Shown here in pieces: positions 3,893 through 54,040 of a DNA stretch of 64,000 nucleotides. How positions within the stretch are numbered: position 1 is the stretch's first letter; each line of letters begins with the position of its first letter. This DNA comes from Blepharisma stoltei ATCC 30299. Taxonomy: Eukaryota; Protista; Ciliophora. The stretch covers positions 877,581 through 941,580 of the forward strand of contig CBFDEM010000013.1 of assembly GCA_965603825.1 (NCBI GenBank), read 5' to 3'. The translations under genes were made by a program, and so were the position numbers. The notes beneath the pieces were generated by a model. That model ran no database searches. It was given only the letters and a program-made list of their open reading frames with translations, and was not told the origin of the DNA.

Positions 3893-3930
3893 TTATACCA
3901 TATGACAAGACAATTACTCTAAAGCGATGA

Positions 3931-23312: not shown

Positions 23313-23987
23313 CTAATTTATGATCTTATTAGTAAATTTGCTTGATGAGCGTCATACAGATGATAAAGTGCTCTCTGCTAAGGTCTTGAGATGTTTTAAT
23401 TGTTTATTTTTCAAATCAAACTGTATAAGTCTGTAATCATTAGTTATAAAGTAAAAGCTTTCTTCATATAGCAAAGAATCTAAAATATTAAAGAATTTTT
23501 TAATCCCTTTTTTCAGTTGAACATTGTTAATCTTAACTATATCTTCTTGATATTTTATTTTTGCAGCTTTTTCAGGAGACAAATTTAAGAGTGATTCAAT
23601 GAAGCTACTGCTGTTGAACTGATTGATTTTATCTAAGGTGGCACATAAATATATATATTCATTTAATCTTTTTTCTATAAATAAAATCTTTTCTAATGAT
23701 TTTTCAACTTTTTCTTCTATTTGCATTACTAGTATTGATGCTTCTTGGAGTAACGTTAGTCGATCTTGCTTTATTTTCTGCTTTAAGCCTTTTAAAAATT
23801 CAGAAATTATTTTTCTGGTTTGAGGATCAGGATTTTTCATGATTGGAGTGAAATGGTGGCTTCCAGGTGTTTCTCCATGCTCTCCAAGGTGGCTTTGGCA
23901 TAAAAACACAGATTTATTATCAGAACAATCACATAGATAAATTGGTTTGTTTGAGCAATTTATTGAGCAAGTAATCAACTCATCCAT
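23313..23987 (-). pseudogene. Family A copy A0: zinc module + coiled coil fused directly to last propeller blade (internal deletion)
   Basis: MDELITCSINC.. joins to SLLYEESFYFITNDYRLIQFDLKNKQLKHLKTL; family stop codon lost, frame runs on to TAG at 23313. Confidence 0.7.
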
Positions 23988-24808
23988 AATTGTATTCCTT
24001 CTACAAAAATTCCATAAATTTAAAGGAATTTGATAAGACACACTATTAAAATTCAATTTAAAAATATAATGATATCAGCTAGAAGCCTCATTTTAGAAAT
24101 TAATTCTATTTAGTCTTGGGTAATTTTTTTAAAATCTTTTATTCAATATTGGAAATAAATATATTGTGGAGCAAGGATTAGCTCAATTATTTATTAGTTT
24201 TTGGCACAATTTATTCATAGACTTATTTTTTGAGTAAAATATAAGATTCATGTCTGTATTAAATAAATAATTTATATCTTGAGGCAATGAATTAACAGAG
24301 AACAAATTAACAATATTTTGTAGTCTTTATTTTAAATAATCAAAACAAATTTATCTCTAATCTACTACCAAGACAGATCTTTGACTTGCCCAGCGTGTCT
24401 TATCTTGAAATTTTGCATTAGATAATAATAATTTTAAGCTGCACTGATTATTAATTTACCTAAACTTAATTTCAGCTTAAAATTTATAAAAATCTCGATG
24501 AATAATAAATTCAGCTGATATTGCTCAGTATACTGAAAATAATGTTCATAGGAAAAGCTTTTTCAGTGTCGCTGTAATCAGAAGACAAGAATGCTCTTCC
24601 AGACCTGAAAGAAATCAACTATTAGCATAAGTGCATAATACCTGCAAGCTCCATTCTTTTCTTTACTTGGCTTTATTTTAACATAAGATTTAATTCTAAA
24701 ATGCTAGAAGATGAATCCGCCAGCATTTACCTTATTTTTTCTATTTGTATCAAAATTAAATTCCTATTTAAGATTATGAATCTTTAATTTAAAAAAATTA
24801 AAGTTAAA

Positions 24809-26089
24809 TTATAAGGTCTTGAGATGTTTTAATTGTTTATTTTTCAAATCAAATTCAATGAGTCTGTAGTCACAAGTTATGAAGTAAAAGCTATCTTTAT
24901 ATAGCAATGAATAAGAATGGCGAGGATAACCTTCTCCAAATATGTTAGAAGTCCCAAATTGTGTTCATGTATTGATATCGTTTAAGCTACTTTCATAGCA
25001 GGATCTATTGTACTGAATTATATAAGCTTTGTTTTTGGTTGCTAAAATAGTCTTTCCTGTGCTAGTATTTAATGTAATTGGAACATTTGTATATGAATTA
25101 TTTGAAATATTGTGTCCGTATAGATATTGAGATTCATAACCTACAATTAATATCACACCATTAATAAAAGCACAAGAAATAAATCTGTTGCCTGATACTG
25201 GATACTGAGCAATTGCATTTCAATTGTTTGATACAAGCGAAAATTTAAAAGAAGCGTTTCCATACCCTCCAAACATGTAAACAAAATCATCAACTGCAAT
25301 AAGTCCAGAATAGTTACTGTACCGAGAAGAATCCAAAGGAATTATTAAGTTTTTTGGGGTTATAATAAAAGTTTCTGAATCGAAGCAACAAAACACAAAG
25401 CCATCATTTAGCAAGCAAGTTGGATCTCATCCTTTTCAGTTTTTATTTATGTTTTGAGAAATTGAGGTTTGCGACACAACATCAACGGCAAATAGAACTC
25501 TGTCTCTAAAATATTTTATGATTGGTTCTACTTTTATAGGCCCTAAGCCTTCAAAGTTGTCAATATCAAATAAAAGTTTTGCTTCTTTAACAGAAAATAG
25601 ACTTTCTATTTTTTCTTTTATACCAGAGTTGTTAATCATCATTATATCTTCTTGCAATTTTATTTTTACTGCATCTTCAGGAGATAATTTTAATGCTGAT
25701 TCAATGAAGCTCTTGCTGTTTAGATTATTGACTTCTTCCAAGGTATCGCATAAACGTATATACTCGTCTAATCTTTTTTCTATACTTAAAAGCTTTCTTA
25801 ATGATTTCTCAGTTGATTCCTTTACTTGTTTTATTAGCAAGGATGATTCTTGAATTATTTTTGACCGATCTTGCTTTACTTGAAGCTTTAAGTTTTTCAA
25901 AAATTTATAAATAGTGATTTTGGTTTGTAGGTCTGGATTTATCATGATTCGAGTGAAATGATGATTCCCAGCTGATTCTCCATGCGTTCCAAGATGATTA
26001 TAGCATATAAAGATTTTTTTATCTGCGCAATCGCATACATAAATTGGCTTATTTTGACAACCTATTGAACAAGTCACAAGCTCATCCAT
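24809..26089 (-). CDS. Family A copy A1: Cys/His zinc module - coiled coil - Kelch-like beta-propeller (426 aa)
   Basis: 1281-nt single frame with four TGA=Trp; VYMFGG, ILIVG blades. Confidence 0.85.
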
Positions 26090-26953: not shown

Positions 26954-28234
26954 TTATAAGGTCTTGAGATGCTTTAATTGTTTATTTTTCAAATCAAATT
27001 CAATGAGTCTGTAGTCACAAGTTATGAAGTAAAAGCTATCTTTATATAGCAATGAATAAGAATGGCGAGGCCAACCTTCTCCAAATATGTTAGAAGTCCC
27101 AAATTGTGTTCATGTATTGATATCGTTTAAGCCACTTTCATAGCAGGATCTATTAAAGTCAATTATATAAGCTTTGTCTTTGGTTGCTAAAATAGTCTTT
27201 CCTGTGCTACTATTTAATGTAATTGGAACATTTGTATATGAATTATTTGAAATATTGTATCCGTATAGATATGGAGATTCATAACCTCCAATTAATATCA
27301 CACTATTAATAAAAGCACAAGAAATAATTCTGTTGCCTGATACTGGATACTGAGCAATTGCATTTCAATTTTTTGATACAAGCGAAAATTTAAATGAAGC
27401 GTTTCCTACTCCTCCAAACATGTAAACAAAATCATCAATTGCAATAAGTCCAGAACAGTTACTGTATCGAGAAGAATCCAAAGGAATTATTAAGTTTTTT
27501 GGGGTTATAATAAAAGTTTCTGAATCAAAGCAACAAAACACAGAGCCATCATTTAGCAAGCAAGTTGGATCCCATCCTTTTCAGTTCTTATTTATATTTT
27601 GTGAAATTGAGTTTTGTGACACAACATCAACAGCAAATAGATCTCTGATTTTAAAATATTTTATTATTGACTCTACTTTTATAGGCCTCAAGACTTCAAA
27701 GTTGTCAATATCAAATAAAAGTTTTGCTTCTTTAACAGAAAATAGATTTTCTATTTTTTCTTTTATACCAGAGTTGTTAATCTTTATTATATCTTCTTGC
27801 AATTTTATTTTTACTGCATCTTCAAGAGATAATTTTAATGCTGATTCAATGAAGCTCTTGCTGTTTAGATTGTTGATTTCTTCCAAGGTATCGCATAAAC
27901 GTATATACTCGTCTAATCTTTTTTCTATACTTAAAAGCTTTCTTAATGATTTCTCAGTTGATTCCTTTACTTGCTTTATTAGCAAGGATGATTCTTGAAT
28001 TATTTTTGACCGATCTTGCTTTACTTGAAGCTTTAAGTTTTTCAAAAATTTATAAATAGTGATTTTGGTTTGTAGGTCTGGATTTATCATGATTCGAGTG
28101 AAATGATGATTCCCAGCTGATTCTACATGCGTTCCAAGATGATTATAGCATATAAAGATTTTTTTATCTGAGCAATCGCATACATAAATTGGCTTATTTT
28201 GACAACCTATTGAACAAGTCACAAGCTCATCCAT
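26954..28234 (-). CDS. Family A copy A2 (426 aa)
   Basis: 1281-nt frame, near-identical to A1 in N-terminal half. Confidence 0.85.
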
Positions 28235-28849: not shown

Positions 28850-30157
28850 TTAATCAGAAAGAAAATATAATACCTGCAAGTTCCATTTGAGAAGCTTTAA
28901 TTGTTTATTTTTCAAATCAAATTCAATGAGCTTATTCCCACAAGTTATAAAGTAAAAGCTATCTTTATATAGCAATGAATAAGAATGGCGAGGATAACCT
29001 TCTTCAAGCATATTTGCAGTCCCAAATGGTGTTCATGTATTGATATCGTTTAAGCCACTTTCATAACAGGATCTATTGTAGTCAATTATATAAGCTTTGT
29101 TTTTGGTTGCTAAAATAGTCTTTCCTGTTTTACTATTTAATGTAATTGGAACATTTGTATATGAATTATTTGAAATATTGTATCCGTATAGATATGGAGA
29201 TTCATAACCTACAATTAATATCACACTATTAATAAAAGCACAAGAAATATATCTGTTGCCTGATACTGGATATTGAGCAATTGTATTTCAATGTTTTGAT
29301 CCAAGCGAAAATTTAAATGAAGCGTTTCCAGATCCTCCAAACATGTAAACAAAATCATCAATTGCAATAAGTCCAGAATAGTTACTGTATCGAGAAGAAT
29401 CCAAAGGAATTATTAAGTGTTTTGGGGTTATAATAAAAGTTTCTGAATCGAAGCAACAAAACACAGAGCCATCATTTAGCAAGCAAGTTGGATCCCATCC
29501 TTTTCAGTTCTTATTTATATTTTGTGAAATTGAGGTTTGTGACACAACATCAACAGCAAATAGATCTCTGTTTTTAAAATATTTTATGATTGGCTCTACT
29601 TTTATAGGCCTCAAGACTTCAAAGTTGTCAATATCAAATAAAAGTTTAGCTTCTTTAACAGAGAATAGACTTTCTATTTTTTCTTTTATACCAGAGTTGT
29701 TAATCATCATTATATCTTCCTGTAATTTTATTTTTCTAGAATCTTCAGGAGATAATTTTAATGCTGATTCAATAAAGCTCTTGCTGTTCAGATTATTGAC
29801 TTCCTCCAAAGTATCGCATAAGCGTATATACTCGTCTAATCTTTTTTCTATACTTATAAGCTCCCCTAATGATTTCTCAGCTGCTTCATTTATTTTCTTT
29901 ATTAAAAAGGATGATTCTTGAATTAATTTTGACCGATTTTGCTTTACTTGAAGCTTTAAGCTTTTCAAAAATTTAGAAATAGTAATTTTGGTTTGTAGCT
30001 CTGGATTTTTCATGATTCGAGTGAAATGATGCTTCCCAGCTGATTCTCCATGTGTCACAAGATGATTATTGCATATAAAGATCTCTTTATCCGAGCAGTC
30101 GCATGCAACAATTGGCTTATTTTGGCAACCTACTGAACAAGTCACAAGCTCATCCAT
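28850..30157 (-). CDS. Family A copy A3 (435 aa; altered C-terminus from a 3' deletion)
   Basis: 1308-nt frame; ..KQLKLLKWNLQVLYFLSD* reads into downstream intergenic motif tacctgcaag. Confidence 0.8.
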
Positions 30158-31302: not shown

Positions 31303-32583
31303 CTATAAGGTCTTGAAATGTTTTAATTGTTTATTTTTCAAATCAAATTCAATGAGTTTGTAGTTGTAAGTTATAAAGTAAAAACTATCTTTATATAGCA
31401 ATGAATACGAATGGCGAGGATAATTGTGGTCAAGCATGCTAGCAGTCCCAAATGGTGTTCATGTATTGATATCGTTTAAGCCACTTTCATAGCAGGAGCT
31501 ACTGTACTGAATTATATAAGCTTTGTTTTTGGTTGCTAAAATAGTCTTTCCTGTGCTACTATTTAATGTAATTGGAACATTTGTATATGAATTATTTGAA
31601 ATATTATATCCGTATAGATATGGGGATTCATAACCTACAATTAATATCACACCATTAATAAAAGCACAAGAAATAAATCTGTTGCCTGATACTGGATACT
31701 GAGCAATTGCATTTCAATTTTTTGATACAAGCGAAAATTTAAATGAAGCGTTTCCATACCCTCCAAACATGTAAATAAAATTATCAATTGCGATAATTCC
31801 AGAGCAGTTACTGTACCGAGAAGAATCCAAAGGAATTATTAAGTTTTTTGGAGTTATAATAAAAGTTTCTGAATCGAAGCAGCAAAACACAGAGCCATCA
31901 TTTAACAAGCAAGTTGGATCTCCAATTTTAGAGTTCTTATTTATGTTTTGTGAAATTGAGGTTTGTGACACAACATCAACGGCAAATAGATCTCTGTTTT
32001 TAAAATATTTTATGATTGGCTCTACTTTTATAGGCCCCAAGCCTTCAAAATTGTCAATATCAAATAAAAGTTTTGCTTCTTTAACAGAAAATAGACTTTC
32101 AATTTTTTCTTTTATACCAGAGTTGTTAATTTTTATTATATCTTCTTGTAATTTTATTTTTACTGCATCTTCAGGAGATAATTTTAATGCTGATTCAATA
32201 AAGCTCTTGTTGTTTAGATTGTTGACTTCTTCCAAGGTATCGCATAACCGTATATACTCGTCTAATCTTTTTTCTATACTTATAAGCTCTTCTAATGATT
32301 TCTCAGTTGTTTCCTTTATTTGCTTCATTAGCAAAAATGATTCTTGAATTACTTTTGATCGGTCTTGCTTTACTTGAAGCTTTAAGCTTTTCAAAAATTT
32401 AGAAATAGTAATTTTGGTTTGCAGGTCTGGATTTGTCATGATTAGAGTGAAATGATGCTTTCCAGCTGATGATCCATGCGTTCCAAGATGATTATTGCAT
32501 ATAAAGACCGCTATATCTGAGCAATCGCATACATAAATTGGCTTATTTTGACAATTTATTGAACAAGTCACAAGTTCATCCAT
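31303..32583 (-). CDS. Family A copy A4 (426 aa)
   Basis: 1281-nt frame; WKGWDP replaced by SKIGDP. Confidence 0.85.
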
Positions 32584-33418: not shown

Positions 33419-34695
33419 TTATAAGGTCTTGAGATGCTTTAATTGTTTATTCCTCAAATCAAATTCAATGAGTTTGTAGTCGCAGGTTATAAAGTAAAAA
33501 CTATCTTTATATAGCAATGAATAAGAATGGCGAGAATCACCTTGTCTAAACGTGATAGCAGCCCCAAACGGTGTTCATGTATTGATATCGTTTAAGCCAC
33601 TTTCATAACAGGATCTATTGTACTGAATTATATAAGCTTTATTTTTGGTTGCTAAAATAGTCTTTCCTGTGTTAGTGTTTAATGTAATCGGACCATTTGT
33701 ATATGAATTATTTGAAATACTATAGCCGTATAGACATGAAGATTGATAGCCTACAATTAATATCACACCATTAATAAAAGCACAGAAATATATGCGTTGC
33801 CTGATACTGGATACTGAGCAATTGCATTTCAATTTTTTGATCCAAGCGAAAATTTAAATGAAGCGTTTCCATACCCCCCAAACATGTAAACAAAATCATC
33901 AATTGCAATAAGTCCAGAACAGTTACTGTATCGAGAAGAATTCAAAGGGATTATTGAGTTTTGGAGTTATAATAAAAGTTTCTGATTCAAAGCAACAAAA
34001 CACAGAGTCATCATTTAGCAAGCAAGTTGGATCTCATCCTTGTCAGTTCTTATTTATATTTTGAGAAATTGAGGTTTGTGACACAACATCAACAGCAAAT
34101 AGATCTTTGATTTTGAAATATTTTATGATTTGCTCTATTTTTATTGGCTTCAAGCCTTCAAAATTGTCAATATCAAATAAAAGCTTTGCTTCTTTAACAG
34201 AAAATAGACTTTCTATTTTTTCTTTTATACCAGAGTTGTTAATCATCATTATATCTTCTCGTAATTTTATTTCTAATGCATCTTCAGGAGATAATTTTAA
34301 CGCTGATTCAATAAAGCTCTTGCTGTTTAGATTGTTCACTTCTTCCAAAGTATCGCATAAACGTGTATATTCGTTTAATCTTTTTTCTATACTTAGAAGC
34401 TTTTCTAATGATTTCTTAGCTGCTTCATTTATTTGCTTTATTAGCAAGGATGATTCTTGAATTATTTTTGACCGGTCTTGCTTTACTTAAAGCTTTAAGT
34501 TTTTCAAAAATTTAGAAATAGTAATTTGGTTTGTAGGTCTGGATTTTTAATTATTCGAGTAAAATGATGTTTCCCAGCTGATTCTACATGCATCCCAAGA
34601 TGATTATTGCATATAAAGACCCCTTTATCCGAGCAATCGCATACATAAATTGACTTATTTTGACAATCTATTGAACAAGTCACAAGCTCATCCAT
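33419..34695 (-). pseudogene. Family A copy A5, three small deletions (frameshifted or homopolymer assembly errors)
   Basis: 1277 nt vs 1281; -1 at ~34525, -2 at ~33960, -1 at ~33784, all in short runs. Confidence 0.7.
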
Positions 34696-35554: not shown

Positions 35555-36823
35555 TTATAAGGTCTTGAGATGTTTTAGTTGTTTATTTTTCAAATCAAAT
35601 TCAATGAGTTTGTAGTCGCAAGTTATAAAGTAAAAGCTATCTTTATATAGCAATGAATAAGAATGGCGAGAATCACCTTGTCTAAACGTGCCATCAGACC
35701 TAAATGATGTCCATGCATTGATATCGTTTAAGCCGCTTTCATAACAGTAGTTATTGTACTGAATTATATAAGCTTTATTTTTGGTTGCTAAAATAGTCTT
35801 TCCTGTGCCGACAAATAGCGTAATTAGAACATTTGTATATGAATTATTTGAAATATTGTATCCGTATAAATTTGGAGATTGATAACCTCCGATTAATATC
35901 ACACCATTAATAAAAGCACAAGAAATATATGCGTTGCCTGATACTGGATACTGAGCAATTGCATTTCCATTTTTTGATCTAAGGGAAAATTTAAATGAAG
36001 CGTTTCCATACCCTCCAAACATGTAAACAAAATTATCAATTGCAATAAGTCCAGAGCAGTTACTGTACCGAGAAGAATCTAAAGGTATTATTAAGTTTTT
36101 TGGGGTTATAATAAAAGTTTCTGATTCAAAGCAACAAAACACAGAGCCATCATTTAGCAAGCAAGTTGGATCCCATCCTTTTCAGTTCTTATTTATGTTT
36201 TGAGAAATTGAGGTTTGTGACACAATATCAACGGCAAATAGATCTCTGTTTTTAAAATATTTTAATTTTGTAGGCCCCAAGCCTTCAAAATTGTCAATAT
36301 CAAATAAAAGTTTTGCTTCTTTAACAGAAAATAGACTTTCTATTTTTTCTTTTATACCAGAGTTGTTAATCTTCATTATATCTTCATGTAATTTTATTTT
36401 TAATGCATCTTCAGGAGATAATTTTAATGCTGGCTTAATGAAGCTCTTGCTGTTTAGATTGTTCACTTCTTCAAAGGTATCGCATAAACGTATATACTTG
36501 TCTAATCTTTTTTCTATCCTTAGAAGTTTTCCTAATGATTTCTCAACTGCTTCATTTATTTGCTTCATTAGCAAGGATGATTCTTGAATTATTTTTGACC
36601 GGTCTTGTTTTACTTGAAGCTTTAAGTTTTTTAAAAAATTAGAAATAGTAATTTTGGTTTGTAGGTCTGGATTTTTTATGATTCGAGTGAAATGATGCTT
36701 TCCAGCTGATTCTACATGCATCCCAAGATGATTATTGCATATAAAGACCCCTTTATCCGAGCAGTCGCATACATAAATTGGCTTATTTTGACAATCTATT
36801 GAACAAGTCGTAAGTTCATCCAT
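35555..36823 (-). CDS. Family A copy A6 (422 aa)
   Basis: 1269-nt frame, one TGA at 36182, 4-aa in-frame deletion. Confidence 0.85.
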
Positions 36824-37728
36824 TATTTATCAAACACTACAAATATATAATTTTAAAGGGGCTTATTCTGAATAATAATTAATGAATCGACTAATTTAAA
36901 TGAGAAACTAGAATTCCAAATATTAATTAACTGCTTAGTTGGGTCGCAATAAAACATTTGCATTCTTCAATAGATTTAGGCACAAAGCTTAAACATAAAA
37001 TAGCTATTTAAAGGAAAAAATCATCACAATATTGTATACCTGCGCATTTACTTTTAATTTTATTTGACTAAAATTTAAGGGGTTTACTGCTTTAGATATA
37101 GAATAGTTATAATCAATCTAAATGATAAAAACAGCAGCATACTTTTGTCACGAATAATGCTCATTAGATTTAATTGACTTTATATTTTATAAAGACATAT
37201 TCACTTTCCTAATCGGAAGTAGAGCACAGCTAAAGCACAATAGCATAATTTCTTTGAATATTTCCTTATTGAGCTTCTAAATATGAAGCATGAGAATTTT
37301 TGTTTTTTAGCCCATTTTATTGGTGTCCAAGATTTTACAGCTAATACACAATATGCTCGATGCTACATAAGGATTGATTTAACGTTTTTCTCTTGAGCTG
37401 GAAGGACATTTATTTCTAAAACCTTTCCATAATAAGGTATAGATGATATTTGATTTATAAATTATGCTTAGAATTAATGTTTACAATTTTTATATTTAAA
37501 ATCATTAATTAAACTATAAGGTTTTAAGGCGTTTTAATTCTATTTTCTAGTCTTCAAATTTAATTGAATTAGCCTGAGAGTAGTAGTTACAAAGTAAAAG
37601 CTATCTTTATAAAGCAAAGGATATGAATGGCGACAATCATTATAAGTAAGCATGCTAGCAGTTCCAAGTGTTGTCCATGTATTGATATCATTATAGTTGC
37701 TTTCATAGAAGTTTTTGCTGTAATCAAT

Positions 37729-37804
37729 TATGCATTTATAGATGAATTTGAATACAGTGCTCTATAAATATAATCAGCTGCTCAATTCTAACAAAAATAA
37801 ATAT
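37729..37804. mobile_element. IES-like insertion, 73 bp, TAT direct repeat
   Basis: caatTATgcat...taaaTATataagc; excision gives caattatataagc as in paralogs. Confidence 0.7.
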
Positions 37805-37848
37805 ATAAGCTCTATTTTTAGTAGCCAAGCAAGTTTTTCCTGTATTAG

Positions 37849-37961
37849 AATTTAATGCTTAATTAATTATCCATATTTTCTAAACTCAAACCCTAAAGTT
37901 AAGGCCCAAGCCTTTTTCTCTTTTTGAAGCATATTACTATTGTAATGTGTAAAATTTAATG
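37849..37961. mobile_element. IES-like insertion, 104 bp, 9-bp TA-containing direct repeat AATTTAATG
   Basis: Repeat at 37849-37857 and 37953-37961; paralogs have a single atttaatg. Confidence 0.6.
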
Positions 37962-41329: not shown

Positions 41330-41850
41330 AAGACTAAATATTTACATTGTTCAATAAAACTCTATAGATTTTTTGCTTCATATTGAGAAAGCGTACAAAG
41401 TTTATGCTAAATCAAGAAAAATCTATACTAAATGCACAGGTGCGCAATATTTCGAAGATATTTTTCTTGATATAGCTTTGTTTTTTCGGAAATCATCAAT
41501 TTATTATTAGATTTTATTAACTAACTTAATAATTAAACAATGAAAATATTAAATACTCTTGCTTTATCAGTAATAAAACTGGCGAAATCATAGATGCAAT
41601 ACCACAAGTTTTTTTCGTCTTTTTAGATCATTTTTGTATCAAGGTCTTGAATTATAATCAGTTATTAAGGTATTTCCGTTTTCTTTTTCCTCAAATTTTA
41701 CAGCTAGCACTGAATTTTATATATATTTACCATTGGTTCCAGAGAGATAATTCACACAAGAATTATATTTAAAGTCGATTATAAAGTTTTAAGATGCTTT
41801 AATTGATTCTTTTTAGGTCAAATTGGATAAGCCTGCACTCAAAAGTTGTA
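41330..41850 (-). pseudogene. Relic of a family-A repeat unit (intergenic motifs plus last codons of the gene)
   Basis: Shares attgagaaagcg.acaaa, aaatgcacaggtgcgcaatat, cagtaataaaact motifs and ttataaagttttaagatgctttaattg 3' end. Confidence 0.6.
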
Positions 41851-42274
41851 ATTAAAAAATATTTTCTAATTGCAAAGATTATGAACGACGAGAAGCTTGT
41901 TGAAATATGTGGTTCATTCCAATTGATGCTCATGCTTTGTTATTGTGTAAGCCACTTTCATAATAATTTCTATTGCAGTCAACATGGGTTTAACAGGAAT
42001 TTGATTTAAAAATTCTATATATACTTGGTAACTTGGTAACCAACTGCGAAGAGTTGAGAGTAAGATGAGCCATCTTGATCGTAAGCACATATCATTCAAG
42101 AATAATAAACATTTGATAAGAGAGTCTTATAGGCTGTCATGTGTCAAAAACAAATTGAGGAATGAAGTCCGATCATAAAAGATTGCTATACACTAAATAA
42201 ATTAATGCAAATTGTAATAAATCTAAGAAATTAAGTTACCTATCATTAAAAATTGCAAAAAGATAAATTTATAT

Positions 42275-42660
42275 ATAAAATTGCTAATGCAACTTAAGTT
42301 ATCAAAATTTCAGCATGCTTTTAAAAAAATTTTGGCAAATCAATGAAGTTGGTAAAAGATGCACCAAAATTAATATAAAACTATAATGTGAAAAAGAGCT
42401 TCTGAATGCTGCTACTAAAGATGATATAGAAAACTTGCTCAAACTCAATATTGAGAGAGCCAATTCCAAAAGGATGAGTTTAGTACAATCGCTGACAAAT
42501 GAATTATAGGAAAATGAATGAGACTTATTAAATCTTTTCAATCCTTTATTGGAGCTGTTGGAAATGAAATTGAATCAAATGAACTGTCATCCTTTAGGCA
42601 CAATGCTTCATTTTTTATTATAAATTTAGAGAGATTGGAAATTTCTTCCATAAGTACTCT
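42275..42660 (+). pseudogene. Degenerate family-B fragment
   Basis: aaaagatgcaccaaaata, gatgatatagaaaac, attgaatcaaatgaactgtcatcctttaggcac match B1; frames broken. Confidence 0.65.
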
Positions 42661-43176
42661 TGATTTTCAATTCTAATTGCTGTAGCACTCCTTTTATAAG
42701 AAGAATTTGATTGCAATGCATTGGATATTTCTTAAGCTCTCATATTAACACTTCTTTATAAACCTTCTCCATTTTTCAAATTTTTATATGTATATAAATA
42801 GAAAATCGTATTTCAGGCATCTAAACACCAAAGCACATAATAGAAATATTCTTAATAATTAATACCTTCAAGGCTTTGGTTGGGCAAGCAAAATTCCAAA
42901 TTTAGCATTTAAAAGAATATTCTAGTCAATAAATCTCAAACATAAAAATTAAATAAATAATAGCTTGATTATACTTAAAATTGTATAAAACTTGCTAAGA
43001 TTATAAAAATAATAATTATCTAATTTTGAGTAGAAGTCAATTATAAACTACAGAAAATCTTAAGCCACTTATTTAAAATTGTAACCCAAAACAGTTGCTT
43101 TTCTTAACTTATTCATAAAATCATCATTTGCATTTACTGAAGCCATTTTCAGCAATTAGCTATATCTCTATAAAAA

Positions 43177-44458
43177 ATGCTTAGTTGCAGATGCTTTAAG
43201 GAAAACTGCTATAATAAACCTGCTGGGAAATGTAAATGCGAAAGAAATGTACTATTTTTCATTGAGCATGCACCTGAGCATTTCCAAAAACCCTGCAATA
43301 GAAGTCATCAATGGCTGAGCCCTGACATCAAGCCAGCAGATGAAATCAGCCAACCAATTATTATAAAGCTGATAGAGCTCAAAAAAGATATTGAAGGATA
43401 TAGAAATAAAATAATTTCAGAAGCAAATGAAGTAATCAACAACTTTAAAACTACATTTGGGGAGTATCTAGATCAAATTAATAACATAGAAAAAAGATGA
43501 AGTAAAATCATTGAAGGACTGATGAGTGGAGAAAAGTCTCTTGATGACTCTGCTGAAGATGATATGGAAAATGTGTTTAAACTTTATGCTGAAAGAGCCC
43601 CTAGATGAGATTCAAAACAATATTGTTTGGACTATAGCGAAATATATGCAGCTATAAGCAAAACTTATGAAATTCCTTTTAAAGAGGCCATAGAAGATAC
43701 TATTAAATCAAGTGAACTATCATTTTTTATGAGTAACTCTCAAAATTTCACTACAATAAATTTAGATAGCTTTAAGATAACTTCTACGGTTACTCTTCCA
43801 GTTCAGGAAAGAATTCATCCATATACCTCAAGCTGTATGCTGCCTAATAAATCGTATTTTTATTTCGGCAATCCAAATACGAATTCAGGTCTTACATTCA
43901 CAATTGACAAAAATTACAATGTTAAGCAACTGCAAAAGTCAAAACCAGGCAGCTATATTGATTCTGTTTTTTATGAGAATTTTATGTATTTGATAGGAGG
44001 AGACACCAATATGGCTGAAAGGTATGATTTCGTCCAAAATCAGTGGGAAAGTCTAGCTCCAGTACCTCAAGGTTTGAATTTCGATTTTAGCTGCAGTTTT
44101 TATTTAAAGATTCAATTCTTATAGCTGGATTAAATTTCAATAAGATGATATGCTACAGCATCAGTCAAAACAGCTATAAAGATGTACCTAATTTAGTACT
44201 AAATGTTAGTTATTGCAAATTTATGATGAGAGGGAACAACAGGATTTATTTAGTCGAGAAAGGATGCAGGATTTAGAAAGCGCTGAAAACAATTATTCAG
44301 GTTGGGCTCAAGTATGTGGCTGTGGCATTGCAAATGACCGTCAACTTCAATCAAGTATTGTTCGTCATAAAGGGTCTCTTTATTTCATTCATTTTGATAG
44401 CCAACTATGGAAATTCGATCTCACTTCAAAGCGGCTATCTTATCTAAAAAACGTCTAG
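43177..44458 (+). pseudogene. Family B copy B2, in-frame deletions and two frameshifts
   Basis: Colinear with B1; shifts near 44100 and 44273; Cys-to-Phe change in zinc module. Confidence 0.75.
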
Positions 44459-46275
44459 ATTTAAATTTAATTCTTTTACTTGGAATTGCATATATTTCAA
44501 CTAATTATTTAATTAAATAAAATCTTGAATATCAAACTGGATATAATTTTTTTTGAATAAACATATCAGCCTTTATCATTCACATTTAAGACTTTTTGAA
44601 CCCATATTCGAATTGAGTCTTTTGCTAAAATTAAATAATTCCCTGTAAATTTATAACAGTTTATAGAGTTCTCGTTGTATTTTATTCTATGAATTAATTT
44701 ACCTGACACAATCAATAAATGAGAAATGGTTTTTAGTTAGGAAGATATAATACACTTACAAAGCATTATTCCTCTAATTTTCTCATTAATTAAGAGATTT
44801 AATAAAATTTCTGCACTTAGAAATGATAAGTTTTTCAATTTTTCTATCTTTTGGTTCAAAAATTGCTTTTATGCATTATTTCACTCATCTTACAGTTAGA
44901 AAAATTTGAAAAAGCCACAAATGATAAAGTAAAATCTGCATCTCTTAAATCGCTATTGGAAAAATCAGTTCTAAGAAAAGAGATATTTAACAAATCTGCA
45001 TAGGGATTGTAATATTTAGCAAATTTGATCATCAAAGGAAATCCAATTTTTATTCAGCGTTGCTTGAAGCTAAATTATTCCTTCTGAATACCTGGAAAAA
45101 AGCATAATTTGATAAAGTCTTTGCTTATGTTTTTTGATTCTTCATTGATGAGTGAGATTTAATTGAAGAGATATTTTCTATATTTTTGATATTATTGAGA
45201 ATCTTTTCAATTAAATCTTTCTTTAGAGCTGATGATTTACCAAATTTTATTCTTCCAGGATTTTCTTGAATATGTTTAATTGAAGGTAGAGAGTTTTTTT
45301 TGCCCCTAGAAATCTGCTATTTAGAATTCCAACTACAAAATCTAAAAATCCTTGTTTACTTGACAACTACTTTTGAATTTCAATGGAAAATTCATGCATG
45401 TCCTTCAAATTGCCTACTAAAATTATTTTTTATTGTAGCAATCCAAAATGGCAGTTCAGACTTGCTTTTACGATTGGCAAGAATAAAAATGCCAAACAAC
45501 TATAAAATTCATAAGTTAACTCTTAATTTTTATACTTGCTAAGGTGATATTATACGCTTGCTGAAAGATATAATTTTAAGCAAAAAGAGTGGCAAAGCTT
45601 TGCTCCTACCTCAAGACCCAGTGTTTTGCTATAGTATAGCAGCTATTATAATAACTAACAAATTGCATAAGGAACTAAGTGACAGTCCGTAATTTATCTT
45701 TCTTCGAAGGAATTATCTCAAGTAAAAACTGTCTAGGATAAATTTAATAAAAGTTGAATTGCTCTAAATTTTATATCTAAATTATAAAACTAAATATTTT
45801 ATTGATAATAATTTTATACAAGTTTGCATAAGAATAGGCAATAGACAATGCACATTATGATTAAGCTTACCTATGTTTTCTAAGGCTGCATGATTCAATT
45901 CCATATATAGTTATCTTTCTGAAAATTGAGCCTGAAAGCTCTAAAGATGACAGTAAAATTCATTATTTATATGATAAAAATGCTAGAGCGAATAAAATTT
46001 GCTATTTTGTTGCTCCTAATTATTGCTCTTTTTATTTATAAGTAAATAATTCGAATTTCTAGTTTTAAATAAATTGATTATTCCAGTCAATACACCTTAA
46101 ATTGTAAAATTTTTGGTTGAATAAAATACTCTTATTGTTTGCATAAATAAAAATAAACCCAATTTAAAAGATCAATTGAGATTATAAAGCTTAATATTTC
46201 TCCCATTTTTTGTGGAAAACCATAATGGCTACTGATGTTGATTTAATATCTTAATAGACATCAAATCTATAAAAA

Positions 46276-47708
46276 ATGTTTAGTGGCAGATGCTTCAAAG
46301 CTGACTGCTATAATAAGATTGTTGGAAAATGTGAATGCGAAGGAAATGTACTATTTTGCTCTGAGCATGCATTCGAGCATTTCCGAAAAACACCCTCTAA
46401 AGGTCACATATTACGAGATTCTTACATTAAGCCTGCCAATGACATCAAGCAGCCAATCATTCAAAAGTTGACAGAGCTTAAAAAAGATATGCATAATTTT
46501 CTGAATGCAATTAAACATGCTTTATCAACATTAAAATAAATAAATAAATTAAATATAAGAATATTAAAAATAATTAATAGCTATTAAAATTTTTGTTTAA
46601 TTCTATCAAACTGTATATTAAAGCATTCAGAAGTCAAGCAATAACTAATGCAGGTGAAGTTATCAAAAATTATAAAATCGCTTTTGGAAAATACATAGAT
46701 GAAATTAATTTTATTGATAAAAGATGTAGTAGTTTGATTGATGTTTTGAATAATGGAAAAGAGGTTCTTGACATCTCTGGGGAAAATGACTTGGAAAGTA
46801 TTATCAAACTAAATGCCCAGGCTGCTCAACTAAAAATGCTTGGGTGGGATGTAAAGAAATGCTATTTCAACGCACAGGAATTAAGTACCTCTATAAGCAA
46901 AATATGTGAAATCCCCTTCAATCCTTTTGGAAAGGCGATAGAAGATATGATTGAATCAAACGAACTTTCATTTTTTAGACATAGCTCTCAAAATTTTACA
47001 ACAATAAACTTAGACAGCTTTGAAGTGACTTCTACAATTGCACTTCAAACTCAAGAACCAATCCATGGATATACCTCAAGCTGCATGCTGCCTGATAAGT
47101 CCTATTTTTATTTCGGCAATGTAAATTACAATTCAGGACTAACATTTATTATTGATAGAAATAAAAATGTTAGACAATTACAAAAATCAAAACCAAGTGG
47201 TTATATTGATCCTATTTTTTATAATAACTTTATGTACTTGATAGGGGGACAGAATAATATAGCTGAAAGATATAACATTGCTCAAAATTCATGGGAAAGT
47301 ATAGCTCCAGTACCTCAAGGTTTTAATTACACTTATAGCTGCAATGCTTTATTGAAAGATTCAATCCTTATAACTGGATATCATTTCAATAAAACGATGT
47401 GCTACAGCATAAGTCAAAACAATTATAAAGATGTACCCAGTTTAGTGCTAAATGTGAATTATTATAAATTTATGATGAGAGGAAACAACAGGATTTATTT
47501 AGTCGAGAAAGGATTAAGGATTATAGAAAGCGCTGAAAATGATTATTCAAGCTGGACTCAGGTAGGTGGCTGTAGCATTTCAAATAGCCCTTGACTTCAA
47601 TCAAGCATTGTTCGATATAAAGGCTCTCTTTACTTCATTCATTATAACAACCAACTATGGAAATTCGATCTGGCTTCAAAACAAATTTCTCAAGTAAAAA
47701 GCGTCTAG
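46276..47708 (+). CDS. Family B copy B3, intact (434 aa) once a 128-bp IES-like insert is removed
   Basis: 1433-128 = 1305 nt, same as B1 and B4; TGA=Trp at 47592-47594; TAG 47706-47708. Confidence 0.8.
46487..46618. mobile_element. IES-like insertion, 128 bp, ATAT direct repeat with TAT(G/A)CA inverted ends
   Basis: aaaagATATgcat...ctgtATATtaaagc; paralog B4 reads aaaagatattaaagc; extremely AT-rich; no GT..AG ends. Confidence 0.85.
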
Positions 47709-49035: not shown

Positions 49036-50340
49036 ATGCTCAGTGGTAAATGCTTCAAGGAAAACTGCTACAATAAGCTTGTTGGCAAATGTAGATGCGA
49101 AGAAAATATACTATTCTGCAATGAGCACTTACCTGAGCATTTCCAAAAGTCCAGCAATAAAGGGCATCAATGGTTGAGCTCGCACTTCAAGCCAGCAGAT
49201 GATATAAAGCAGCCAATTATTCAGAAGTTGACTGAGCTTAAAAAAGATATTAAAGCATATAGAAATAAAGCGCTTAGAGAAGCAAGTGAAATAATCAAAA
49301 ACTTTAAAACTACATTTGGGAAATATCTAGATCAGATTAATTATATTGATAACAGATGCAGCAAAATAATTGAAGGGCTGAATAGTGGAGAAGAGTTTCT
49401 TGACGTCTCTACTGAAGATGATATGGAAAGTGTGCTTAAACTTAATGCACAGAGAGCCCAATTAAGAATGGCTGGATGGGATACAAAACAATGCTGTTTG
49501 GACTATAGTGAAATAAATGCAGCTATAAGTAAAACTTATATAACTCCCTTCAATCCATTTGTAAAGGGCATAGAAGATGCTGTTGAGTCAAATGAACTCT
49601 CTTTTTTTAGGAGTGGCTCTCAAAATTTTGCCACAATAAACTTAGATAGTTTTCAGGTAACTTCTACGATTACTCTTCAAATTGCGGAAAGCATTCATGC
49701 GCATACTTCAAGCTGCATACTGCCTGATAAATCTTATTTTTATTTTGGTAATCCAAGTTATAATTATGGCACTACATTTATGGTAGACAAAAATAAAACC
49801 GTTCGACTATTGCAAAAAGCAAAACAAGGTTGCTATATTGATTCTGTTTTTTATAAGAATTTTATGTATTTGATAGGAGGAAGTGCTAATATGGCTGAAA
49901 GGTATGATTTTGCACAAAATCAGTGGCAAAGCTTAGCTCCAGTACCTCAAGGCTTGAGTTTTCAATATAGCTGCAGTATATTATTGAAAGATTCGATTCT
50001 TATAACTGGATATAGTCTCAATAAAATGATATGCTACAACATCATTCAAAACAATTATAAAGATGTGCCCAATTTAGTGCTAAATGTGAATTATTATAAA
50101 TTTATGATTAGAGGGAATAACAGAATTTATTTAGTTGAGAAAGGATGCAGAATTATGGAAAGCGCTGAAAACGATTATTCAGGCTGGACTCAAGTAGGTG
50201 GCTGCGGTATTGCAAATAACGCCCCACTTCAATCAAGTATTGTTCGTTATAAAGGCTTTCTTTACTTCATTCATTTTGATAGCCAACTATGGAAATTCGA
50301 TCTGGCTTCAAAGCAAATTTCTCAAGTAAAAAACGTCTAG
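49036..50340 (+). CDS. Family B copy B4 (434 aa)
   Basis: Intact ORF, close paralog of B1. Confidence 0.9.
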   Translation: MLSGKCFKENCYNKLVGKCRCEENILFCNEHLPEHFQKSSNKGHQWLSSHFKPADDIKQPIIQKLTELKKDIKAYRNKALREASEIIKNFKTTFGKYLDQINYIDNRCSKIIEGLNSGEEFLDVSTEDDMESVLKLNAQRAQLRMAGWDTKQCCLDYSEINAAISKTYITPFNPFVKGIEDAVESNELSFFRSGSQNFATINLDSFQVTSTITLQIAESIHAHTSSCILPDKSYFYFGNPSYNYGTTFMVDKNKTVRLLQKAKQGCYIDSVFYKNFMYLIGGSANMAERYDFAQNQWQSLAPVPQGLSFQYSCSILLKDSILITGYSLNKMICYNIIQNNYKDVPNLVLNVNYYKFMIRGNNRIYLVEKGCRIMESAENDYSGWTQVGGCGIANNAPLQSSIVRYKGFLYFIHFDSQLWKFDLASKQISQVKNV

Positions 50341-50649
50341 ATTTAAATTTAATTCTTTACATTGAAATAATTTATAAATAAGTAATTAAAAAAGCACAGA
50401 CTTAAGCCTAGAATTATATACAATAGAAATATCGAATTATTCAAGCCAAAAGTTATAAAATCACTGAAAAAATAAAAGACAAGTATAAAATCAATAAATA
50501 TATACAATTCAGCTATGGTATAATAACTTATTCCTCTCCATGAGTTACTTTTTTAAAAAATTAATTCCTACCTGATATGGAGAGCTGTTCATAGATTGAA
50601 ATAGATTAAATTTTAAAATTAAGCCTTTAAATCTCAAGAATCTGTAAAT

Positions 50650-51925
50650 ATGTCAATTAGTAGGTGCTTTGTTGATGGCTGTATGAGCAAGCTCTTTGGA
50701 AAGTGTGAATGTGAAGGAATCGTCTTATTTTGCAAAGAGCACGCTGTTGATCACGTAGTAAAACCATCTTCTAAAGGACATCAATGCTTGAGGCTTTACT
50801 TTAGGCCAGCAGACGAAATTAGGCAGCCAATTATCGATAAGCTGAAGGAATTCAAAAATGATATCAAAAAATATAGAAATGCAGCAATTGCTAATGCAAA
50901 TGAAATAATCAACAATTTTAAAAATGAACTTGGAAAATATATCAATAAAATCAATGAAGTAGAAATGAGATGTAATAAAATGATTGAGATTTTATATAGT
51001 GGAGAAGAGGTTCTTGATATCTTTACTCAAGACGATATGGAAAACGTGTTGAAATTAAATGCTACTGGAACTAAAGAGTGCATCGCCGATTGAAATATAG
51101 ACGAATACCAATTGGATTACAAGGATATAAATGCAGCTATTAAAAACATTTATAAAATCCCTTTTAAGATTTATTGGGTAATTGAATCGAACAAGCTTTC
51201 CTTTTTTAGAGCAAATTCTTCAAGTTTTACTACTATCAACTTAGGTTTTTTCTACAGTAGCTCTTCCAACTTGAGAACCAGATCAAGAATATGCTAGAAG
51301 CTGCATACTTCCAGATGGATCTTATTTTTACTGTTGCAATCGGAATTCTACATCAGGCCTCACATTTATCATTGACAAAAATCAAAATTGCAAAAGGCTG
51401 CAAAGCTCAAAATTTAATATGAATGTTGATCCTATTTTTTACAATAATTTTATCTACTTGATTGGTGGAAATTATAATCTGGCTGAGAGGTACGATTTTA
51501 AACGAAACGTGTGGGAAAAGATGGCAAAAATACCTCAGGGTTTGAATTTACAATATAGTTGTAATGCGAGATATAGAGATTCCATTCTTATAGCAGCCTA
51601 CAATCTTCATAAAATAATAATTTATAACACATCTCAAAATAACTATCAAGACGTCCCGAATTTGGCATTGAGTTGTGGGTGATTTAAATTGATGCTAAAA
51701 GGGAACAATAGAATTTATTTGCTTGAGAGAAATAGAAGTATTTTCGAAAGTGCTGAAAACAGCATTTTAAGCTGAAGTCATATAGGAACTAATAGCATTC
51801 CAGCTGAATATTATCAGTCAAGCTTTGTTCTGTATAAGAAATGCTATTATATTGTTGATTATGGCAATAAACTCTGAAAATTTGATTTAACTTCAAAGCA
51901 AGCATCTTATATAAACACTGTCTAA
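50650..51925 (+). pseudogene. Family B copy B5, divergent, frameshifting deletion near 51245
   Basis: Zinc module and IYLIGG..AERYDF blades present; several TGA=Trp; frame change at ttaggttttttctacag. Confidence 0.7.
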
Positions 51926-52747
51926 AATAAGTTATCTTGATTTAATAATCCTCTATTTATATTTGCAAATAAATTGGAGTATTAAGATTGCCTTTATATC
52001 TGAGTGTTGCTTATTTGGGTCTTTTTCTAGCGTTTAATGAGCAGTAAAAAGGCAAAGGCTGCTAGTTATATTTCAGTAATTTCTTTGCACTTTATTAGCA
52101 GCATTATCTATTAAGTGTATTAATATATTTAATAATTATATACAATTAATTTTTTTAGATGTGAATAATAATTATGTACAATTTAATTATTTTTAGATAT
52201 GAATCTAGTCTGGAGATAGCAATTTTGGCGTGTGTGAAAAATACTTTGTGTGCTCCAACTTATAAAAAAGCATTACTAAATTTGATTATATTATAATATT
52301 AACATAAATGAGTCTCGATTTAAGTCATCAAAGCAACAAAACCACTGCTGGCTAATTGCAGGGAAATTGATCTCCCTCAGAAAATCAACTAATAAACAGA
52401 TCAAAGTAGTATAACATTACTGAGACGTTAAGCAGCTTTATGTTTTTATTTCTCCGTCAGCATAGCAAGGGGTATTTATTAGAATGCAATAATTTATTAA
52501 TAAATACAATTTTAAGAGTAGCTGCATAGATTTAGTAGCTATAAAGGATATTGCTTAACAACCCTTATAGTAAAAGTTATAAGCTAAAAAAATAATTCAT
52601 CCTAGCAATGCTGAAATTGAAACATTTTCCTATGTTAAATAATGAAATCTGTAAAAAGTGCCTAAAATCTCGGCTGAGGGATTTTATAGGCTTATAAAAT
52701 TATTATTTTAGTCCTTAAAACAATTAAGCCATCATGAATCTATAAAA

Positions 52748-54040
52748 ATGTTTAGCGGTAGGTGCTTCAAAGATGGTTGCACAAGCAAGCTGCATGGAAT
52801 ATGCAAATGTGAGGGACTCATCCTATTTTGCAAAGAGCATGGACTTGAGCATGTAGAAAGTCCAACTCCTAAAGGACATCAAATCGTAAGATGCTATTTT
52901 AAGCCAGCAGAAGAAATCAAGAAGCCGATTATCGATAAGCTTATAGAATTCAAAAGAGATATAAAAAATTTAGGATTGAAGCGATTGCTAAGGCCAATGA
53001 AATTATAAATAATTTTAAAGTTGCGTTTGGGAAATATATCAATCAAATAAACGAGGCTGAAGCAAGATGCGACAAAATGATTGAAATTTTATATAATGGA
53101 CGAGAGTTTCTTGATATTGCTACTGAAGATAATATGGAAAATATTTTAAAATTAAACGCTACAGACATTCAACAAAAGACGATCTGGTGAAATATAAGCC
53201 AATTAAGCTACAAAGAAGTAAATGAAGCTATTGAAAATATGTATAAACACCCTTTTGTGGCTTACTTTGCAGGAACTTTAGAAGATGAAATTGAATCAAA
53301 CGAGCTTTCATTTTTCAGACATAATTCTTCAAATTTTGCAACTATAAACTTAGATAATTTACAGATTTCTTCTACAGTAACTCTCCCAACTCAAGAATCA
53401 ATCCATGGGTATACAGGAAGCTGCATACTTCCTGATAAAACTTATTTTTATGGCTGCAATAATAATTCTAGTTCAGCCACCACATTTACGATCGACAAAA
53501 ATAAAAATTTAAAGCAGCTGCAAAACTCAAAGGTTAATTATAATGTTTTTCCTATTTTTTTCAATAATTATATCTATTTAATAGGAGGAAACAATAATCT
53601 GGCTGAGAGGTATGATTTTAAACAAAATGTGAGAAAGTATGGCTCCTCTGCCCCAAGGTTTAAATTTTAACTACAGCTGTAATGCGCGATTTAGAGATTC
53701 AATATTTATAACAAGCCAGAGTCTTCAAAAAGTAATAGTTTATAGCATTACCCAAAATAGCTACCAAGAGATTTCGAATTTGGCATTGAGTGTTAGTTAT
53801 AAATTGATACTTAAAGGAAACAGAAGAATTTATGTATTTGAGAAAGGGGGAAGAATTTTCGAAAGCGGTGAAAACAATTTTTCAAGTTGGACTCAAATAG
53901 GAACTAATAGCATTCCGGGTAACCCTGGCCATTCAAGTATCGTTTATTATAAAGGTTCCATTTACTTTGTTCAGCATCAATATCAGCTCTGGAAGTTCGA
54001 TCTCACTTCAAAGCAAGCATCTCAAGTAACAACTTTCTAA
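52748..54040 (+). pseudogene. Family B copy B6, two small frameshifts (or assembly errors)
   Basis: -1 in A-run at ~52965, -2 at ~53630; otherwise full length. Confidence 0.7.

Follow-up and report, generated by a model that had tools for sequence, protein, structure and literature searches.

The closest described relatives in layout of the proteins considered here are of the TRIM-NHL type, among them Drosophila Brat, a RING-less protein that strings together a B-box, a coiled coil and a six-bladed propeller. A second point of reference is provided by the dimeric, bivalent KLHL proteins such as Keap1 and KLHL3, and a third, at the level of genome organisation, by the yeast PAU/FLO and Plasmodium var families of chromosome ends. 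The 64,000-nucleotide stretch of DNA that we analysed (the window) comes from Blepharisma stoltei and covers one end of a macronuclear contig, telomere included, with contig and window finishing together. It uses a genetic code in which TGA specifies Trp, and it holds two gene arrays that invite comparison with each of these systems.

On balance, we lean toward the view that these arrays belong to a RING-less, TRIM-like multigene family of heterotrichs (Blepharisma and Stentor), whose B-box-like/helix/Kelch proteins would act as bivalent binding scaffolds rather than as ubiquitin ligases. No relevant description of B-box/Kelch proteins was found in the literature on Blepharisma, Stentor or other ciliates, and the Blepharisma genome paper makes no mention of Kelch or B-box. 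This large, uncharacterised family is not described in the literature that we searched.

Organisation and turnover of the arrays

Copies were mapped by tblastn with one query per clade, reading TGA as Trp, and by DNA alignments to paralogues (Table 1). The original prediction of eight minus-strand and at least six plus-strand copies is borne out. Specifically, five of the eight minus-strand copies (clade A) are intact, whereas the plus strand carries six clade B copies plus relics, of which two copies are intact, one has a 128-bp insert and three are frameshifted. About half of the 14 copies are thus broken (seven, or eight if B3 with its insert is counted), in addition to further relics. Intact proteins of both clades are about 430 amino acids long. 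The two arrays do diverge from a common region, as expected for the head-to-head arrangement first proposed, but they are not cleanly separated, because an A-type relic lies on the B side and the upstream region of B1 is repeated upstream of B2 (42704-43174, 84% identity) and, as a weaker match, ahead of B4.

Table 1. Features of the arrays and of the adjoining chromosome end (positions in the window)
Feature	Position	Strand	Description
A copy 1	23379..23987	-	zinc module, coiled coil and last blade kept; in-frame deletion of about blades 1-5; stop codon lost (ORF 23316-24092)
A copy 2	24812..26089	-	intact, 426 aa (TGA = Trp)
A copy 3	26957..28234	-	intact; protein 93% identical to A copy 2
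A copy 4	28853..30157	-	intact, 435 aa; C-terminal tail changed and longer
A copy 5	31306..32583	-	intact
A copy 6	33443..34695	-	pseudogene; deletions of 1, 2 and 1 nt (three frameshifts) and a CAA>TAA stop
A copy 7	35558..36823	-	intact, 422 aa; 12-nt in-frame deletion
A copy 8	37543..38565	-	relic; first ~130 codons gone; propeller interrupted by two inserts
Inter-array region	38566..39037	.	upstream of B1; arrays diverge here
B copy 1 (B1)	39038..40342	+	intact, 434 aa, no TGA codon; protein used for modelling
A-type relic	41361..41982 (approx.)	-	intergenic part and 3' end of an A gene, on B side
Clade B relic	42336..42670	+	aa 100-217, 35-47% identity
B copy 2 (B2)	43177..44458	+	pseudogene; two 1-nt deletions and one 12-nt deletion
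Clade B relic	45392..45610	+	aa 226-303, 33% identity
B copy 3 (B3)	46276..47708	+	frame open except for a unique 128-bp insert (46487-46614), ATAT-flanked
B copy 4 (B4)	49036..50340	+	intact, 434 aa; probable RNA contigs
B copy 5 (B5)	50650..51925	+	pseudogene; 11-nt deletion near 51243
B copy 6 (B6)	52748..54040	+	pseudogene; 1-nt and 2-nt deletions; within duplicated block
Cullin-family gene	55206..57208	-	two overlapping frames; same duplicated block as B6
Kelch propeller + ~17 TPR repeats gene	57819..60773	-	open frame runs to telomere, N-terminus missing
Telomere, GGGTGTTA (= CCCTAACA) x 404	60769..64000	+	at contig end

Small introns do not account for the frame changes. Broken copies show deletions of 1, 2 or 11 nt relative to intact paralogues, unlike the introns of B. 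stoltei, which are 15-16 nt long. Likewise, the insert in B3 is a poor candidate for an intron: none of the five excision registers that the alignment permits is bounded by GT..AG, and neither DNA contigs nor probable RNA contigs contain a joint that skips the insert. Nor are the inserts copies of a multicopy MITE, as the one in B3 and the two in A copy 8 (~37858-37961, ~104 bp; ~37732-37804, ~73 bp) are each unique in the somatic genome. Separately, longer relatives of the Kelch/TPR gene that abuts the telomere combine a coiled coil, Kelch and TPR repeats.

Counted genome-wide, the family comprises no fewer than 102 full-length matches in B. stoltei, where the N-terminal module alone gives at least 146, and 120 representative clusters are found at E <= 1e-30. 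Full-length homologues are also present in Stentor coeruleus. Those sampled homologues that bear an organism name, a minority of the sampled hits, all come from Blepharisma or Stentor, but a restriction to ciliates is not established. The subtelomeric position is supported, with statistical enrichment for clade B. Of its 13 loci, 11 are found no more than 50 kb from a contig end, compared with 15% of the genome (p = 5e-8); the wider family is for the most part internal. The tree groups the A copies together and places B1, B3 and B4 in a second clade, and copies have spread recently between contigs. The coexistence of intact, frameshifted, deleted and relic copies agrees with the birth-and-death turnover that had been proposed. 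The locus may have originated through local tandem duplication (the A clade and the B1/B3/B4 clade) and through segmental duplication, for example of B6 with the cullin gene, after which about half of the copies would have decayed; clade B overall sits preferentially at chromosome ends.

Predicted architecture of the proteins

The N-terminal Cys/His module noticed originally is present, but its spacing is corrected here to C-x3/4-C-x7-C-x-C-x6/7-C-x2-H-x3-H-x8-H, which adds an eighth conserved ligand (His44, B1 numbering). Across 68 sequences, C6, C11 and C28 never vary, and C19, C21, H31, H35 and H44 are each retained by 90% or more. The number and spacing of these putative ligands fit those of B-boxes (seven to eight Cys/His/Asp in ~40 residues, arranged in two cross-braced sites), and zinc binding is predicted. 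Profile methods give no such assignment: Pfam zf-B_box (PF00643) matches none of four window proteins (E <= 1) or 72 family members (E <= 0.01), and profile searches of PDB sequences return no B-box, also with a deeper profile. An HNH nuclease match from the PDB search is at chance level. One homologue bears the automatic UniRef name 'B box-type domain-containing protein'.

Five of the eight best structural matches (VIA-align) of the zinc-module model are B-boxes, from TRIM28, PML, COL2, ZFYVE19 and CYLD. TRIM28 B-box1 aligns over 42 of 43 residues with an rmsd of 1.8 A and a Z of 4.4, in a range (Z 4-5) that is weak in absolute terms. Similarly weak scores against a model of pLDDT 71 are obtained for PML B-box1 (Z 4.3) and the COL2 B-boxes (Z 4.6). 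The top-ranked match is a ZZ domain (Z 4.9), RING and U-box domains follow, and Foldseek with the isolated module, whose pLDDT is only 71, yields no significant match. Judged by this model, the N-terminal module would be B-box-like in fold, with a resemblance to B-box1 domains.

In the model, the zinc module is followed by a helix of ~63 residues and then by short helices. A homodimer prediction scores an ipSAE of 0.38, compared with 0.00 for the best control; in calibration, the mark was reached by 21 of 30 solved proteins with same-chain pairs and by none of 23 solved single chains. Between residues 53 and 118, predicted helix contacts recur every three to four residues; residue 65 is matched with 108-112, so that the two helices would run antiparallel. 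The long helix is thus predicted to form an antiparallel coiled-coil homodimer, with a pLDDT of 56 for the partner in the predicted dimer, and the success of this prediction may draw on solved TRIM coiled coils.

By profile and by model, the C-terminal part is a six-bladed Kelch propeller. Of 72 members of the family, 69 have a Pfam match to Kelch_6 and 51 have one to Kelch_1; in B1 and B4, Kelch_6 passes the gathering threshold. The AlphaFold2 model of B1 has a mean pLDDT of 90 and places six blades over residues 187-433, most of them above 90. Its best Foldseek counterparts include the Kelch domains of Keap1, KLHL2 and KLHL3 (E ~1e-12, TM ~0.7 on target). From Keap1-type Kelch domains and the strand order in the model, we take the B-C and D-A loops to be the binding (top) face. 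The layout of zinc module, coiled coil and Kelch propeller in the original prediction is matched by a B-box-like model, a predicted antiparallel dimer and a propeller seen by both Pfam and AlphaFold2.

These parts suggest how the proteins might work. Two chains would pair antiparallel through the long helix to make a rod with a B-box at either end, and the rod would carry two propellers. Each propeller would bind a ligand, most likely a protein, via a face built from its B-C and D-A loops. We take this to be the top face, as in Keap1, and it is also the one that diverges most between paralogues. On their own, such proteins would be bivalent binding scaffolds and not ubiquitin ligases. The RING-less order of B-box, coiled coil and six-bladed propeller resembles Brat in outline, and one could imagine regulators of this type whose variable face binds RNA motifs while the dimer represses translation or localises mRNAs. 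Since the propeller is Kelch rather than NHL, we regard an RNA-binding role as highly improbable.

Constraint, expression and alternative roles

The genes have a gene-wide dN/dS of 0.25-0.5 that rises to 0.5-0.7 in the B-C and D-A loops. For clade B, values are 0.53 for these loops, 0.05 for the A-B and C-D loops and 0.19 for the strands, and the balance of replacement and silent changes sets the two classes of loop apart (Fisher p = 2e-4). B3, taken without its insert, gives 0.25 against B1 and B4. Among young A copies, a 12-codon loop that links blades 5 and 6 has accumulated 23 replacement and two silent changes, and in clade B, too, this loop varies more than any other. Tested against local neutrality, the hotspot has p = 0.078; its p of 6e-4 relative to the silent rate of the whole gene was chosen from ~105 windows and is non-significant after correction. 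No gene-wide or loop-wide positive selection was found in clade-level counts, in which dN/dS is below 1 in every structural class and loop, and no single site is significant (lowest p 0.12). The description of the arrays as diversifying thus gains from the concentration of replacements in the B-C and D-A loops and loses from the ratios and the corrected hotspot, and diversification of the family is only suggestive.

Read coverage was surveyed over 46200-52000, in the clade B region, using runs whose RNA label is a guess and relying on contig depth, which reflects expression poorly. Probable RNA contigs span the B4 frame (49031-50334) from end to end and leave intergenic DNA uncovered, while pieces of the broken B3 and B5 have only low contig depth. 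At least one intact copy, B4, is therefore likely to be transcribed, in line with the expectation that intact copies are expressed. Could the arrays nevertheless be mostly decaying, functionless subtelomeric duplicates, whose variable loops reflect relaxed constraint only? The broken half of the copies and the relics, the loop ratios that near 1 without exceeding it, and the low depth over B3 and B5 are what such decay would produce. Intact copies, however, retain all eight putative zinc ligands and frames of ~430 codons, the overall ratios and the low values of 0.05-0.19 in the A-B/C-D loops and strands of clade B speak of constraint, B4 is fully spanned by probable RNA contigs, and Blepharisma and Stentor share the same architecture. 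We judge wholesale decay to be decidedly improbable.

An alternative to the scaffold reading places the proteins in the ubiquitin system, as substrate adaptors or as E3 ligases in their own right: the Kelch propeller would deliver substrates to a cullin-RING ligase, or else the B-box would stand in for a RING. The nearest propeller folds do belong to Cul3 adaptors (Keap1, KLHL2/3), and a cullin-family gene, about equally similar to Cul1-4, lies 1.2 kb from B6 in a pairing that is seen again at C13:744-748 kb. However, the block with B6 and the cullin gene was duplicated from, or to, C13:743945-747997, and both pairings represent one inverted segmental duplication (92-95% identity), such that the neighbour is not independent evidence for a ubiquitin link. 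Ten other cullin matches in the genome fall outside the listed family-locus positions, the nearest of those checked (on C37) being ~65 kb away. Moreover, no Pfam match to a RING, BTB/BACK, F-box or SOCS box occurs in 72 family members. Only one codon of open frame precedes the ATG, the first putative zinc ligand is residue 6, leaving only five residues ahead of it, and the B4 RNA contig begins 5 nt before the ATG, which makes a hidden N-terminal exon unlikely. As judged from sequence, no domain in these proteins ties them to ubiquitination, and we consider this alternative unlikely.

The arrays might also encode a diversifying repertoire for intracellular recognition of endosymbionts, viruses or transposon products, in the manner of TRIM5-like restriction factors. 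Copy number, birth-and-death turnover, the subtelomeric enrichment of clade B, the clustering of replacements in the B-C and D-A loops and the blade 5-6 loop would all suit this role. The same loops nonetheless keep dN/dS below 1 without a significant site, their hotspot is marginal locally and otherwise picked from many windows, and the majority of the wider family is internal. We rate this reading as quite unlikely, and a defence role for the family is pure speculation. Just as doubtful is the broader proposal that heterotrichs, independently of animals, assembled TRIM-like dimeric sensors, in which subtelomeric clades diversify one or a few propeller loops, notably that between blades 5 and 6, against changing intracellular targets. 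The arrays show no sign of acting in ubiquitination or defence.

Should the predicted fold and dimer prove correct, the TRIM ground plan, in which a B-box and an antiparallel coiled coil precede a C-terminal binding domain, exists in ciliates, RING-less, joined to Kelch and present in more than 100 genes. What, then, does a B-box/coiled-coil scaffold do without ubiquitination, and why does one clade reside at chromosome ends? Blepharisma and Stentor now offer a well-delimited group of candidate binding proteins, in which the variable loops point to ligand sites. Were the sensor reading true, a single-celled eukaryote would possess a repertoire akin to innate immunity, aimed at symbionts, viruses or transposon proteins.

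Comparison with known systems

The scaffold proteins that we favour share with TRIM-NHL proteins and Brat the predicted order of B-box, coiled coil and six-bladed beta-propeller; their coiled-coil dimer is predicted to be antiparallel, and in the model their B-box-like fold is nearest to B-box1 of TRIM28 and PML. They differ from TRIM proteins in having no N-terminal RING by Pfam and a helix of ~63 residues instead of roughly 100. Unlike TRIM-NHL proteins and Brat, they carry a single B-box-like module with a C-x-C ligand pair that Pfam zf-B_box misses, and more than 100 copies, arrayed in tandem and near chromosome ends, occur in one ciliate's genome; their propeller is Kelch where that of TRIM-NHL proteins is NHL.

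KLHL proteins such as Keap1 and KLHL3 offer the closest solved propeller folds and are likewise dimeric and bivalent. The Blepharisma proteins, in contrast, lack BTB and BACK in all 72 members and hence a known route to Cul3, would dimerise through the predicted coiled coil, and have a shorter propeller of ~247 residues.

Like yeast PAU/FLO and Plasmodium var, the family is enriched at chromosome ends, has duplicated in tandem and by segments, contains numerous pseudogenes and has spread recently between contigs. Only one of its clades is subtelomeric, however, with no evidence of antigenic or switching behaviour, and because no domain that marks surface location or secretion was found, its proteins are taken to be intracellular, unlike the products of those families.

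Family copies at a macronuclear chromosome end

The last part of the window is a run of 404 GGGTGTTA repeats (complementary to CCCTAACA) that starts at position 60769, and the contig ends at the window's final base. The same telomere repeat is given for Blepharisma in the genome paper (PMC9942806). With TGA read as tryptophan, the window has 45 open frames of 150 codons or more, compared with 29 otherwise. Queries for the search tools were TGA-free segments or proteins from databases, and translation with table 4 was confined to scripted analyses. Together with homologues named as B. stoltei proteins, these features identify the window as a genuine B. stoltei macronuclear subtelomere. Telomere addition appears to have taken place within a gene encoding a Kelch propeller and TPR repeats, because its frame runs open to the telomere without a start codon, whereas longer relatives (coiled coil, Kelch and TPR) carry the N-terminal part. 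At the other side of the window, a second tandem family of this subtelomeric region encodes putative aspartyl proteases: three of its four genes were scanned, all matching Pfam Asp (eukaryotic aspartyl protease; E 1e-41 to 1e-57).

Positions of features in the window and in the B1 protein model
Feature	Position	Strand	Remarks
Putative aspartyl protease genes	875-6868	-	four in tandem, about 345-352 codons each
Large open frame	8277-14276	-	2000 codons (TGA = Trp); no Pfam match in either of two large TGA-free pieces
Class-V aminotransferase / cysteine-desulfurase-like gene	18640-20667	-	zf-C2H2_jaz match at residues 163-188, N-terminal to the enzyme domain
Insert	37732-37804		within a family gene
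Insert	about 37858-37961		within a family gene
B1	39038-40342	+	intact; modelled protein
A-type relic	41361-41982		on the clade B side
B3	46276-47708	+
Insert, 128 bp	46487-46614		within a family gene; ATAT on both flanks
B4	49036-50340	+
B6	52748-54040	+
Cullin-family gene	55206-57208	-	adjoins B6; matches positions 205-620 of Pfam Cullin
Kelch/TPR gene	57819-60773	-	Kelch propeller and ~17 TPR repeats (102-bp period); 985-codon frame, TGA = Trp
Beta-beta-alpha module	B1 residues 15-37		small
Long helix	B1 residues 55-117		single helix
Short helices	B1 residues 130-167
Propeller	B1 residues 187-433		six blades, four strands each

A map built by tblastn with one copy per clade, and then by DNA alignments, confirms the originally described mixture of intact and broken genes. 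Clade A comprises eight copies on the minus strand, and clade B six on the plus strand along with two relics; the two clades diverge from 38566-39037. Of the clade A copies, five are intact (422-435 aa), one has an in-frame loss of about blades 1-5, one carries a stop and three frameshifts, and one lacks the N-terminus and has two inserts. In clade B, two copies are intact (434 aa each), the 128-bp insert is the sole break in one otherwise open copy, and three have deletions of 1, 2 or 11 nt relative to intact paralogues. The 15-16-nt introns of this organism were considered as the cause of the clade B frame breaks and rejected in favor of these deletions. The A units are repeated together with their intergenic DNA. 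The original prediction of two head-to-head arrays thus holds for the opposite-strand divergence but not for clean separation: because the B side holds an A-type relic and the region upstream of B1 has a duplicate ahead of B2, the locus is a mosaic rather than two clean arrays.

Each of the three inserts within family genes is unique in the genome, and they might be retained germline-limited sequences. The 128-bp insert has no GT..AG register and also occurs in DNA contigs from an independent sample; no joint removing it occurs in DNA contigs or in contigs of two runs guessed to be RNA. Expression was read from Logan contigs on the clade B side. In the two guessed-RNA runs, B4 is covered over 49031-50334 at depth 53-85, B3 and B5 are represented by pieces at depth 3-7, and sampled intergenic DNA is mostly uncovered, whereas DNA runs give cover throughout, the 128-bp insert included. 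The family frame begins one codon ahead of the ATG, and the B4 contig from a guessed-RNA run starts 5 nt ahead of it.

Family size, chromosomal distribution and the cullin neighbor

The genome-wide count proposed with the original prediction gives a minimum of 102 full-length matches over the 64 contigs (41.46 Mb), and a minimum of 146 for the zinc-plus-helix part. Among 1.84 billion representative proteins, a profile search recovers 120 clusters at E <= 1e-30. All named proteins in 20 sampled clusters belong to B. stoltei or Stentor coeruleus, the other clusters being metagenome or Logan contigs, and the Stentor homologues are full-length. Relatives fuse the same compact propeller with a protein kinase or TPR arrays. 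As a lead only, the Atlas holds clusters pairing Pfam zf-B_box with Kelch.

When genome matches are merged into 46 loci, with counts as lower bounds, 11 of the 13 clade B loci (at least 40% identity to B1) lie within 50 kb of a contig end, a zone comprising 15% of the genome (p = 5e-8). For the whole family the figure is 16 of 46 (p = 7e-4). Subtelomeric enrichment is therefore upheld for clade B, but most of the wider family resides in internal tandem clusters. Clade B copies near the end of contig 4 (C4:1007743) and 38-53 kb from the end of contig 35 (three copies, C35:726605-742337) form a very tight clade, pointing to recent duplication between these contigs. In our best account, the family expands through tandem and segmental duplication, clade B resides at chromosome ends, and the proteins would act as bivalent binding scaffolds.

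Does the cullin-family gene beside B6 connect the family to ubiquitin ligases? Pfam reports no Cullin_Nedd8 domain for this gene. A paralogue at C13:744881-746158, on the same contig, is 96% identical and has a broken B copy alongside. However, the cullin-B6 block and C13:743945-747997, ~190 kb further into the contig, form a single inverted duplication spanning 4 kb or more (92-95% identity), and none of the remaining cullin matches in the genome adjoins a listed family locus. We count the adjacency as coincidence for now. The ubiquitin and defense readings of the family are unsupported.

Selection on the propeller loops

Pairwise dN/dS values are 0.33-0.51 inside clade A and 0.25-0.32 inside clade B. 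Propeller residues were classed through the strand order in the model, and the B-C and D-A loops between blade strands are presumed, by analogy with Keap1, to make up the ligand face. For these loops the clade B dN/dS is 0.53, against 0.05 for the A-B and C-D loops and 0.19 for strands; the corresponding clade A values are 0.47, 0.85 and 0.35. Parsimony counts on 8-9 intact members per clade, copies from other contigs included, give 0.43-0.47 overall and 0.6-0.7 for the B-C and D-A loops, with no significant replacement excess at any loop or site. Among five young A copies, a 12-codon stretch in the D-A loop between blades 5 and 6 has 23 replacement versus 2 silent changes (local omega 3.1; binomial p = 0.078). 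Testing it with the gene-wide silent rate lowers p to 6e-4, a value to be read in light of its selection from about 105 windows. The same loop is also the most variable in clade B. Diversification of this one loop is therefore suggestive.

Protein architecture and its likeness to TRIM proteins

Of the 72 family members, 69 carry Kelch repeats according to Pfam, which detects no other recurrent domain and no RING, BTB, BACK or F-box. The AlphaFold2 model of B1, made from the 72-sequence alignment, has a mean pLDDT of 90. Its six blades bear out the expected propeller, which Foldseek groups with the Kelch domains of Keap1, KLHL2 and KLHL3 (E about 1e-12).

The zinc module carries eight conserved ligands (C-x3/4-C-x7-C-x-C-x6/7-C-x2-H-x3-H-x8-H). 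By sequence profile, B-box membership failed: Pfam zf-B_box is unmatched in the window proteins scanned and in the 72 family members, and profile searches of PDB sequences with the module found nothing. Modeled in isolation (pLDDT 71), its closest structural neighbors are cross-brace zinc domains, and B-boxes make up five of the top eight. TRIM28 B-box1 aligns over 42 of 43 residues (Z 4.4, rmsd 1.8 A), and PML B-box1 is also matched. On this model the module is called B-box-like and nearest to B-box1, a fold assignment that is likely but weak.

A homodimer is predicted for residues 1-185 (ipSAE 0.38 versus 0.00 in the best control; controls passed), at a mark reached, when the tool was calibrated, by 21 of 30 homodimers and by 0 of 23 monomers of solved structure. 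Contacts recur each 3-4 residues over 53-118 in an antiparallel register, with residue 65 against 108-112. Although it could reflect recall of solved TRIMs, this predicted antiparallel coiled-coil dimer is the TRIM arrangement. The TRIM-like layout of the original prediction is largely right and, as modeled, can be drawn more sharply as a RING-less protein in which a B-box1-like module is joined to a six-bladed Kelch propeller and dimerization is predicted to be antiparallel.
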